From Piromyces finnis finn (lineage: Eukaryota; Fungi; Neocallimastigomycota): a stretch of DNA of 64,000 nt. The notes under the pieces are model-generated. The model saw only the letters and a list, made by a program, of their open reading frames with translations, was not told where the DNA came from and ran no database searches. Every line of letters begins with the position of its first letter. Position 1 is the first letter of the stretch. Below are positions 60,243 through 64,000 of the stretch, piece by piece. The stretch spans positions 434,001 to 498,000 of the forward strand of contig MCFH01000023.1 in the NCBI GenBank assembly GCA_002104945.1, written 5' to 3'. Position numbers and translations under genes: made by a program.

Positions 60243-63200
60243 ATGATACTACAGTCAAAATATCACTATTTCTTAGTATATATTATTATATACATTTTAT
60301 TATTATTAACTTTAACATATGAAAAAGATGTTCCTATTCCAAGATTTCAGATTATATCAAGTGAAGAAAGTATTACCATACATGATGGTATGAAATTAAC
60401 TTACATCAATAAAATATAAATAAATATCAAATTACTGTGTGATAATAACTTTTTCTTTTTTTTGTTTTTCTTTCCATATGACGATTATTACAAATAGCAT
60501 TAACTATATCATTAGAGCATTCATACATACCAAATGATAATAAAACTTATAGTTTTTGTGTTATATTTGATGAAAATAATATAACAATGGATGATTTAGA
60601 AAATGTATGGATAGGTAAAAAAGAAGATTTATTACAAGATAATGTTCAATTCAGTACTATCTATAAAAAACCTGGAGATAAAACAATTGTAATTTTAGTA
60701 ACTTCCACCAAATTTTATTTTAATGAAGATAACAATACTATTGAATCTAATGAACTCATTTCTTCTTCTACTAAAAGAATTCAAATTAAAGTTGAATATG
60801 GAACATGTAAAATATTATCTATTCATATTCATATATATATATCAGAAAAAAGTTGTTTTTTTTTTATTATAAAAAAATATCTTTTAAAATTTTAACAAAA
60901 TTATCTATATTTTATATAAAATTAATATGAACTTTAAAACGGCTATTGAATAAAAAAGATTGTTATCATTATTCACAATATGTTAATTGGAATCCTTTTA
61001 GTAAGGATGATATTTATAAAAGATATTTTAATGGAAATTCACCTATAATGCATATACAACTCTATAATTCACATTTTCCAGATAATACACAAATGGCAAC
61101 CGAAATTACAAAATCCTTTTCATTAATTGGAGAACATCCTACTCTTTTTCTTACTAACAATACACATTCATATACCATTGAATCAGAAAATATATTAGTA
61201 AGATTAAAATAAAATAAATTTATTAAAAAAAAAAGTTATAATAATTAATGATATAAATTGAAATTTTTATTAATCGATAAATTCAATATAATGATATATA
61301 TTCAAAAATAATTTGATTTTATCAATAGAATGATAATACTGAGTGGACAGTTAGAATTGATAAATCTTATTTATATAGCACCAACCCTATATCATTAAAA
61401 ATAAAATCAAAAGGATCAAATATTTTAGGTTGTGGTATAGAAGATATTGATATGATTTTTCATATTCCAACTGCATATGAATTAGACTTAGGCTTAGATA
61501 TAACTGACAAAATTGTAATAACAAAATTCATTTAATATAAATTCTATTTCTAATACTAACATTAAATAAGCATAAATATTTGATTTAGTATATAATTATT
61601 TAATGTTTTTTTAACATTGTATTCTATTTTATATATATTATATATATTATATACATTTTCATATTTTATATAATTTTCTTTCCATTTCAAATATATATAT
61701 ATATATATATATATATTTCAATGCTATTTATATTTTATTCAATATATATATTGACTGTACAATATAAAACAATACATTAAAAATGGTTTTCCATTTTTAG
61801 AAATTTGATAGTTCAACAAATGATGGAAATATTCGAATAGACAGTAAGATATATCGAATTGATAAAATTGATACTTTTCATAGTGTTTCCAACCCAAATT
61901 TGAATGTACTAAATCTAGAATTAAGTAATATAAATAATAAGGAAGATGAATATTCTGTTATTGCCCTCAGTAATGATTTCATGGAAACCTATAAAATTTT
62001 TGATTTAAAAAAAACAAATAAAACAGCAGATGCCGATGTATTTACCACTTGTCAAGGAACCTCTAAATTAAGTTGTAGTATTCAAAAATATCTTAATATT
62101 ATGGTTCTTCAACGATATCTTATTGTACATACTAACACAGGAGTTTTCTATACCTCACTTCCTTCAGTATTAACTGATTTTTTGAGACCAACAGGTGATA
62201 TGCCTTCACAATTTCATCCTTTAAAAGAATTACATACCACAATTGCAAAACAAGGTTATGAAAACATCAAATTAATGGCCACTACAAATACCATTACTAC
62301 AAATTCTACTTATATTTATGGTATTTTTTCTACATCTACTACTGGTGTTAAAAATCGTATAATATATAGTTTAGAAAATTATTTTGTTAAAGGATTATGG
62401 CGAGCTACCAACATTGATGAAATTTTTTCAACCCTTAATATTCAAAATAAAAACTCTAAAACAGAATTTATTTCTGCTATTCGATTCAATGAACAAAATA
62501 TTTATTTAATCGGTATTCCTGTAGAAGATGAACGCTATCCAAATCTCTATAAAAACTGTGCTATTATTATTCATACAACCACCATTTTTGATAAAACAAC
62601 AGATTTTTCTATGGAATTTAACTTACCCGATAACGAATATTTTTATGGAATGAGTCTTCATGAAAATAATTATGATATATTTATATATGGTACCTCTATT
62701 TATCATTCAAATGATGGTGGATACACCTTTAAAATAAAAAATAAGCTTAATATTCTAGACTCTGGGGATACTTTCAGTAAACCAGAATACTTCATTGATA
62801 TAAAATCAACACACTACCGTTCATCAGTTTACTTTATTACAAATTTATCAAATGTTTATTATGGTAATACTTCAGTAACTCATTATATTTTATTGGAATG
62901 GGCACATTTGGAACCAAACCAATTAATCAACTATGTTATCAATAACCATGGTACACTTTCTATCATTGATTATTCTTTAGGATCATTAAATAAAAACCCT
63001 TCAGATAACATTAATTCTAAATATCCTCTTAATATCATATTTTCATCTGGCACCATTCCTACAAAAGCCATTATTGAATTTTCTAATTTTAATAAAATTG
63101 CCTTTGATGGACCTTTTCCCTTAGTTCCAATTATTCGTAATGATAATGATATTTGGTTATATGGTTACGGAGTTGATGCACCGTTCGATAATTCCTATAT

Positions 63201-64000
63201 TGGATATGTTATTACTTTAAAAAATACAGATGATCGTCTTTTCATCTATGAAATTAGTAAAAATCAAGAATTATTACGAGTAATTCCAGAAAACAATTTT
63301 TCTCATGAATCTCGTAGTGATCCATTAGAAATTCATATTCACAAAAACAATATAAAATATTCTTCAACTGATTATATAGATTTTAATTCTTTTTCAGTTC
63401 CATTAAAAAACAATGCAATAGTTACACTTAGCACAAATGGTATTTAAGTTGTATATTTTTTATTATTATTATTATTATTATTATTATTATTATTATTATT
63501 ATTATTATTATTATTATTATTATTAATTATTATTATTATTATTATTATTATTATTATTATTATTATTATTATTATTATTATTATTATTATTATTATTATT
63601 ATTATTATTATTTTATTATTATTATTATTATTATTATTATTATTATTTATTATTATTATTATTATTATTATTATTATTATTATTATTATTATTATTATTA
63701 TTATTATTTATTATTATTATTATTATTATTATTATTATTATTATTATTATATGCATACATATACTCAAATTTAAATAATTTTTTATTACTATCAGATATA
63801 GGTAGTAGAATATGGACTAAAGGGGATGTTAATAAAGCTATTGTCGTTAGGAATGGATCATTTATAATTAGAAAAATAATTGATGATAGATCTGTTTTAG
63901 CAGAAATGATATTCCCCATAAGAAGTTGGATGGATATCAAAAAAGAAATACCACCAAAAACATTATATCTTTCATGGGATATCTATGATCTTCGAGGTAT
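60243..64000 (+). CDS. CATSPERB: CatSper auxiliary subunit beta-like large extracellular protein, partial; exons 60243-60387, 60498-60806, 60959-61197, 61329-61514, 61801-63439, 63796-~63996, continuing beyond the window
   Basis: It has a signal peptide and phase-consistent splicing. Several ordered blocks resemble recalled CATSPERB: SFSLIGEHPTLFLTNNT, YLNIMVLQRYLIVHTNTGVF, GMSLHENNYDIFIYGTSIYHSNDGGYTF, FPLVPIIRNDNDIWLYGY and DVNKAIVVRNGSFIIRKIIDDRSVLA. The gene itself is certain; the family call is from memory. Confidence 0.68.
63461..63750. repeat. (ATT)n microsatellite, ~290 bp with a few interruptions, filling most of an intron of the CatSper-beta-like gene
   Basis: TTA repeats between the donor at 63440 and the acceptor at 63794-63795. 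Confidence 0.95.

Follow-up and report, generated by a model that had tools for sequence, protein, structure and literature searches.

Gene structure

We have analysed a window of 64,000 nucleotides (nt) of the Piromyces finnis genome (contig MCFH01000023.1, positions 434,001 to 498,000 of the forward strand). At the end of this window, at 60243-64000 on the plus strand, lies a gene whose product resembles CatSper beta (CATSPERB), an auxiliary subunit of the sperm-type Ca2+ channel CatSper. We consider it very probable that this region codes for the Neocallimastigomycota orthologue of CATSPERB, of which about 907 residues out of roughly 1,370, or the N-terminal two thirds, fall in the window. 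This assignment is carried by the CATSPERB-specific C-terminal domain of its orthologues, by family profiles that retrieve mouse CatSper beta, and by the predicted fold of the largest exon.

The window holds six exons and five introns of the gene, with an in-window coding sequence of 2723 nt (about 907 codons). Exon boundaries were set by tblastn with orthologue proteins and were then compared with the joints of spliced transcripts (Table 1). All five introns (5/5) have GT..AG borders, and the six exons contain no in-frame stop. The locus is extremely AT-rich, with a GC content of 20-30% in the exons and 3-17% in the introns, which fits an anaerobic gut fungus. Within intron 5, about 300 nt (63448-63750) form a near-pure (ATT)n microsatellite, where the GC content goes down to 3% and which read tools pass over as repetitive.

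The predicted product was described in the earlier note as being of a secreted type, and its N-terminus bears this out. After a short polar start, residues 10-24 form a 15-residue hydrophobic core with a mean Kyte-Doolittle hydropathy of 2.97, and polar residues follow. Judged by its hydropathy, this N-terminus would be a signal-peptide-like secretory segment. The in-window product also contains ten N-x-S/T sequons. Between the hydrophobic core and the region equivalent to the CATSPERB_1st domain there are about 120-150 further residues, encoded by the end of exon 1 and exon 2 (60243-60806). This extra N-terminal module of about 150 amino acids (aa) had no Pfam match, and exon 2 gave non-significant matches only; in the Pfam search, the matches of exons 2 and 4 were at chance level. 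Both Anaeromyces robustus (residues 1-154 of P0006) and the Piromyces sp. E2 locus keep the module, which is missing from the Neocallimastix lanati model.

Table 1. Features of the CATSPERB gene in the window (P0006 and P0001 are the A. robustus and Piromyces sp. E2 orthologues; X1 and X3 are transcript runs)
Feature	Position	Strand	Remarks
5' untranslated region	60176..60242	+	first bases of spliced contig X1 record 1, ahead of the ATG
Exon 1	60243..60387	+	ATG; signal-peptide-like hydrophobic N-terminus; phase 1 end; joint 60386/60497 (cut +1); product aligned with P0006 residues 1-50 (tblastn)
Exon 2	60498..60806	+	70% identity to P0006 54-154; joints in transcript contigs
Exon 3	60959..61197	+	73% identity to P0006 158-235; CATSPERB_1st-equivalent region begins; acceptor AAG, supported by transcript joint 60806/60959
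Exon 4	61329..61514	+	putative N-terminal domain continued; 71% identity to P0006 236-297; joints 61197/61329 and 61514/61801
Exon 5	61801..63439	+	546 codons + 1 nt, the largest; beta-propeller (CATSPERB_2nd-type), then start of putative head domain
Intron 5	63440..63795	+	GT..AG; transcript contigs X1 record 1 and X3 record 13 skip 63439-63794
Exon 6	63796..64000	+	ends at window edge; part of putative CATSPERB head domain; 79% identity to P0001 522-592

Transcription

Transcript data were available from four public runs of three studies and were kept as contigs, which are silent on expression level and life stage. A contig of 4183 nt (X1 record 1) has its first base at 60176 and extends 1393 nt past base 64000; it aligns to the window with 0 mismatches, and precisely the five introns are missing from it. 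The five intron joints, as expected for the multi-exon gene that had been proposed, are present in spliced contigs from the three studies, and contigs of the other runs repeat single joints. The spliced form of the transcript demonstrates that the gene is expressed as RNA and that its processing agrees with the model. The possibility of a silent pseudogene was rejected in view of the spliced transcripts and of the reading frames, all of which are intact. Past the window, at most 465 codons can follow in the transcript, and P0004, a close orthologue described below, has 463 residues after the equivalent DLRG position. Accordingly, the whole product should measure about 1,370 residues.

Two irregularities were seen in the contigs. 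At 63938, one low-depth X3 contig has an additional A in an A-run of exon 6, which would shift the frame; the other three runs match the window, and the additional A is probably an assembly error. High-depth contigs of three runs touch two short AT-rich stretches, 60856-60880 and 62007-62024, with 32 other letters between them. These contacts look like a chance match to an unrelated abundant transcript and not like a true joint.

Orthologues in gut fungi

Relatives of the gene were gathered by word search with exon 5, and a third word search was made with the C-terminal region; the proteins obtained are labelled P0001-P0009. The closest to exon 5 are the partial Piromyces sp. E2 protein PIROE2DRAFT_6445 (P0001, 665 aa, 78% identity) and two metagenomic open reading frames (ORFs) of 515 and 516 aa (P0002 and P0003, 78% and 67%). 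A JGI transcript product of 882 aa (P0004, 71%), the N. lanati protein H8356DRAFT_918507 (P0005, 1143 aa, 66%) and the partial A. robustus protein BCR32DRAFT_160332 (P0006, 986 aa, about 63-67%) follow. With the same exon layout and 63-78% identity, the Neocallimastigomycota proteins are plain orthologues of the window gene. The close orthologues extend into the CATSPERB C-terminal domain and have a single transmembrane helix close to the end; in P0004, a hydrophobic 19-mer lies at 855-873.

The annotation of these genes is poor. P0001, P0005 and P0006 are all named 'hypothetical protein' and are all partial or truncated models: P0005 is without exons 1-2, and P0006 and P0001 are without the C-terminus. 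The orthologous locus of Piromyces sp. E2 (KZ150811.1) has the same exon layout as the window gene. There, a single CATSPERB gene is annotated as three, at 5704-7107, 8001-10318 and 11034-11609 (291, 665 and 148 aa); the contig stops before the gene is complete. The public models of CATSPERB in gut fungi are thus fragmentary, every orthologue found being partial or split. The window's own protein was absent from the results of the three word searches, whose combined coverage was of lengths from 283 to 1543 aa. A correct model of the P. finnis copy is apparently absent from the protein collection, which may hold a short C-terminal fragment model (<485 aa) that has no words in common with exon 5.

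Family membership by sequence

The most direct evidence for the family comes from the C-terminal domain of the orthologues. The CATSPERB_C model (PF15149) matches P0004 at 142.6 bits (E 1.9e-41) and P0005 at 132.3 bits (E 2.6e-38), against a Pfam cut-off of 27 bits for both CATSPERB_C and CATSPERB_head. P0004 also matches mouse CatSper beta (chain E of structure 7EEB, 7eeb_E) at E 4.2e-30. The distant members P0007, P0008 and P0009 are full-length and contain CATSPERB_C at E 1.8e-28 to 8.9e-40. By BLASTP, exon 5 is collinear over 282 residues with P0009, from the chytrid Cladochytrium tenue (E 2e-7).

The exons of the window were searched one by one, and the other CATSPERB domains appear as weak matches, collinear and in the expected order. 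CATSPERB_1st (PF21541) gave no direct match from the window exons in the Pfam scan; it is found at the position of exons 3-4 in the orthologues only (P0006 197-253, E 0.018; P0005 36-86, E 0.059). CATSPERB_2nd is found inside the exon 5 equivalent of P0002 (E 6e-4). Weak CATSPERB_head (PF22830) matches span the end of exon 5 and exon 6: residues 4-42 of window exon 6 align to profile positions 110-149 at E 9e-4, with a score of 19.3 bits that is under the cut-off, and P0001 and P0006 give 24.8 and 21.8 bits, also below the cut-off, at the expected collinear position.

Three profiles were compared with structures in the PDB. Profile A1 holds Neocallimastigomycota sequences only; A2 is the full family, with the window exons among its rows; and A3 holds exon-5 equivalents only, to which three distant CATSPERB proteins were added. 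With A2, 7eeb_E is matched at E 9.4e-49; the match consists of two stretches, both significant and collinear, and one of them falls within exon 5 (profile positions 394-481 aligned with chain residues 401-485, independent E-value 1.2e-6). For A3, the top match in the PDB is 7eeb_E 401-482 (E 8e-7), and the next family is that of the GH74 Asp-box propellers (E 0.26). It is because of the three distant CATSPERB proteins, which distinguish A3 from A1, that the profile becomes significant. From these sequence comparisons we consider the CATSPERB resemblance of exon 5 to be real, yet too weak for a single-sequence search.

The first indication of this resemblance had been a set of peptides that the earlier note had likened to human CATSPERB. 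All of them are present on the plus strand. The first, GMSLHENN...DGGYTF, is exactly at 62647-62730, and its likeness to CatSper beta is borne out by the alignment to 7eeb_E 401-485 in the family profile and by the A3 result. This block holds an Asp-box-like S-x-D-x-G-x-T-F motif, which by itself is generic to propellers and is not diagnostic alone. The second block, YLNIMVLQRYLIVHTNTGVF, corresponds to exon-5 residues 97-116 and is collinear with P0009, whose alignment covers the first and second blocks. The third, DVNKAIVV..., is present inside the weak CATSPERB_head match of exon 6, with a start at 63825 and not at 63826 as had been given. The fourth, LSWDIYDL, stands at the end of the window. 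The earlier note had paired it with STWFLYNF. In the profile alignment, mouse SWFLYNF comes just before a conserved 'W..(6)..C', and the fungal SWDIYDL is about 110 residues before the counterpart of that element, so that the two are no more than possible equivalents.

Predicted fold of exon 5

An AlphaFold model of exon 5 was built from alignment A3; the shallow alignment A1 gave a predicted local distance difference test (pLDDT) score of 38.5. A feature search of the ESM Atlas gave no usable match. When this model was compared with the PDB by Foldseek, the top four chains all belonged to the CatSper complex, with the beta chains 9ubw_E and 7eeb_E at E 5e-12 and 8e-12. VIA-align superposed model residues 115-427 on residues 255-517 of 7eeb_E with Z 16.6 and a root-mean-square deviation of 3.7 A over 199 residues at 18% identity; 9ubw_E followed with Z 16.1, and every other chain had Z of at most 11.4. 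In this prediction, exon 5 is a beta-propeller most like that of mouse CatSper beta.

A resemblance that runs through the S-x-D-x-G-x-T-F motif could also be expected if the gene encoded a generic Asp-box beta-propeller ectodomain of the sialidase/BNR, VPS10/sortilin or GH74 kind. The motif is indeed there, in the first block, and GH74 xyloglucanases and sortilin are found further down the rankings by sequence and by fold. However, BNR, Sortilin and GH74 had no Pfam match, and the GH74 profile match (E 0.26) stands against one of 8e-7 for CatSper beta. In the fold comparison, GH74 chains reach a Z of at most 10.4 and SorCS2 one of 9.2, against 16.6 for CatSper beta; Foldseek placed generic propellers at 2e-5 or worse. 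The orthologues, moreover, have a C-terminal domain specific to CATSPERB. On profile, fold and orthologue C-terminal domain results, we rejected a generic propeller, which we regard as scarcely credible. The earlier note had named such a propeller as the outcome that would speak against CatSper beta; the profile search placed CatSper beta first.

The CatSper auxiliary subunits share a common propeller-immunoglobulin-stem-transmembrane plan, and a gamma, delta or epsilon paralogue might therefore be mistaken for beta. Other auxiliary chains of the CatSpermasome match the model, 7eeb_H at E 7e-9 and 7eeb_F at E 5e-6. Against this, beta is the best match both by sequence and by fold, and the orthologues match only the CATSPERB_C, _head, _2nd and _1st models and never CATSPERG, CATSPERD or CATSPERE. 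Assignment to one of these paralogues was rejected on both grounds, and its chance of being right seems to us negligible.

Several results weigh against the assignment to CATSPERB. The exon-5 model has a mean pLDDT of 53.7, and only residues of about 220-370 exceed 70 (66-90 there). Exon 5 alone had no Pfam match and no PDB match, a phmmer search of the PDB with the 515-aa ORF gave nothing relevant, and profile A1 had no CatSper match in the PDB. The matches to the head and 1st domains are under the Pfam cut-offs. CATSPERB_C, which is the family's best-defined domain, and the transmembrane helix have their positions past base 64000 and are read in the orthologues, not in the window gene. Considering the orthologue C-terminal domains, the A2 and A3 matches to 7eeb_E and the fold results together, we retain CatSper beta as the identity of the product, as had been proposed.

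Relation to earlier work

CatSper1-4, beta, gamma and epsilon have been dated to early eukaryotic evolution, in a screen that included the genome of Allomyces macrogynus (PMC5362262), and are regarded as ancient, pre-metazoan genes (PMC5362262, PMC7935092). In Allomyces transcriptomes, there is expression of CATSPERB, CATSPERG and CATSPERD homologues (bioRxiv 10.1101/230292). An atlas of flagellar proteins in fungi, published in 2026, spans 184 proteomes, five of them from Neocallimastigomycota (P. finnis, Piromyces sp. E2, A. robustus and two Neocallimastix). It places nine fungal proteins in a CATSPERB orthogroup, 9/9 with PF15149, gives further orthogroups for CATSPER1-4, D/E, G, T, EFCB9 and TMEM249, and points out that not all flagellated fungi have the complex (PMC13358043). 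Besides this atlas, our literature search found no paper that links CatSper with Neocallimastigomycota.

The novelty of the locus had been rated too high, with CatSper published as pre-metazoan and a fungal CATSPERB orthogroup given in the atlas. The family of the window gene is known, and its presence in this clade is already on record in databases and in a single recent survey; as one more orthologue, the gene has low novelty. The P. finnis gene leaves the known distribution of the family unchanged. The gain is one gene model, correctly delimited and supported by RNA, for a family whose annotation in AT-rich gut-fungal genomes is poor.

Other features of the window

In the Pfam search, the other long ORFs of the window showed only RecQ and RNase III/Dicer domains. 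On the plus strand, an uninterrupted ORF of 1328 aa at 3593-7579 encodes a RecQ helicase (DEAD, Helicase_C, RecQ_Zn_bind and RQC) with three HRDC stretches. A second, of 2056 aa, at 38570-44740 of the same strand, has two RNase III domains at its end, as in a Dicer-like protein.

Proposed function

In the mouse CatSpermasome structure 7EEB, attributed to Lin et al. 2021, beta is reportedly a type I glycoprotein whose ectodomain, together with gamma and delta/epsilon, is said to cover the CatSper1-4 pore tetramer on the extracellular side like a canopy. The single transmembrane helix of beta reportedly makes contact with one voltage-sensor domain, and the channel is said to depend on beta for its assembly and stability and not for ion conduction. 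By analogy with this mouse complex, the matching parts in the window are the signal-like N-terminus, the ten sequons, the propeller and the putative head domain. The fungal product would then be a type I membrane glycoprotein that forms part of a canopy over a CatSper1-4 pore. Such a complex would be located in the flagellar membrane of the zoospore, where stimuli could lead to Ca2+ entry and this, in turn, to an altered flagellar waveform, with turning and chemotaxis as the outcome.

Steering of zoospores with a CatSper-type channel, as the earlier note suggested, is a plausible hypothesis. A wider proposal can be put forward only tentatively, and we hold it to be possible rather than probable. 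According to this proposal, anaerobic gut fungi would have retained a CatSper complex that is whole and functional, with pore, beta, gamma, epsilon, theta and EFCAB9, and their asexual zoospores would steer to plant material with it; the ancestral job of the channel would have been flagellar chemotaxis in general and not fertilisation, and the extra N-terminal module, specific to the lineage, could act in sensing. It is also conceivable that the product, while a true member of the CATSPERB family, no longer serves a CatSper pore and has another role, for example in adhesion or in another flagellar membrane complex. The extra module of the fungal protein would suit such a change of role. However, the protein keeps 63-78% identity across four genera, with frames and splicing intact, and fungal CATSPER1-4 orthogroups exist (PMC13358043); we consider such a change of role very unlikely.

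A CatSper beta subunit in P. finnis would fit the view that gut-fungal zoospores keep a sperm-type Ca2+ channel. If so, they would offer a non-animal, non-sexual setting in which the role of CatSper could be studied.

Comparison with known CatSper beta proteins

The fungal product and mouse CatSper beta (chain E of 7EEB and of 9UBW, a CatSper dimer) appear to have the same domain order of signal peptide, N-terminal domain, propeller and head. In the mouse protein and in the fungal orthologues, the C-terminal domain with its single transmembrane helix comes last. The mouse propeller has the same Asp-box-like strand as fungal exon 5, but identity between the two propellers is only 12-18%. The fungal product is also longer than its mouse counterpart (about 1,370 versus 1,109 aa), with the extra 150 residues or so that precede the 1st domain and about 100 more that come after the head-domain region. 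On the one hand, mouse CatSper beta is a protein of sperm; on the other hand, the swimming cells of the gut fungus are asexual zoospores.

Outside animals and gut fungi, the C. tenue protein HK405_005502 (P0009) contains CATSPERB_C at E 7e-36 and shows about 20% identity over exon 5. The protein RCL1_005663 of Eukaryota sp. TZLM3-RCL (P0008) contains CATSPERB_C at E 9e-40 and weak PKD-like matches. The N-terminal add-ons of these chytrid and protist CATSPERB proteins differ from the gut-fungal form.

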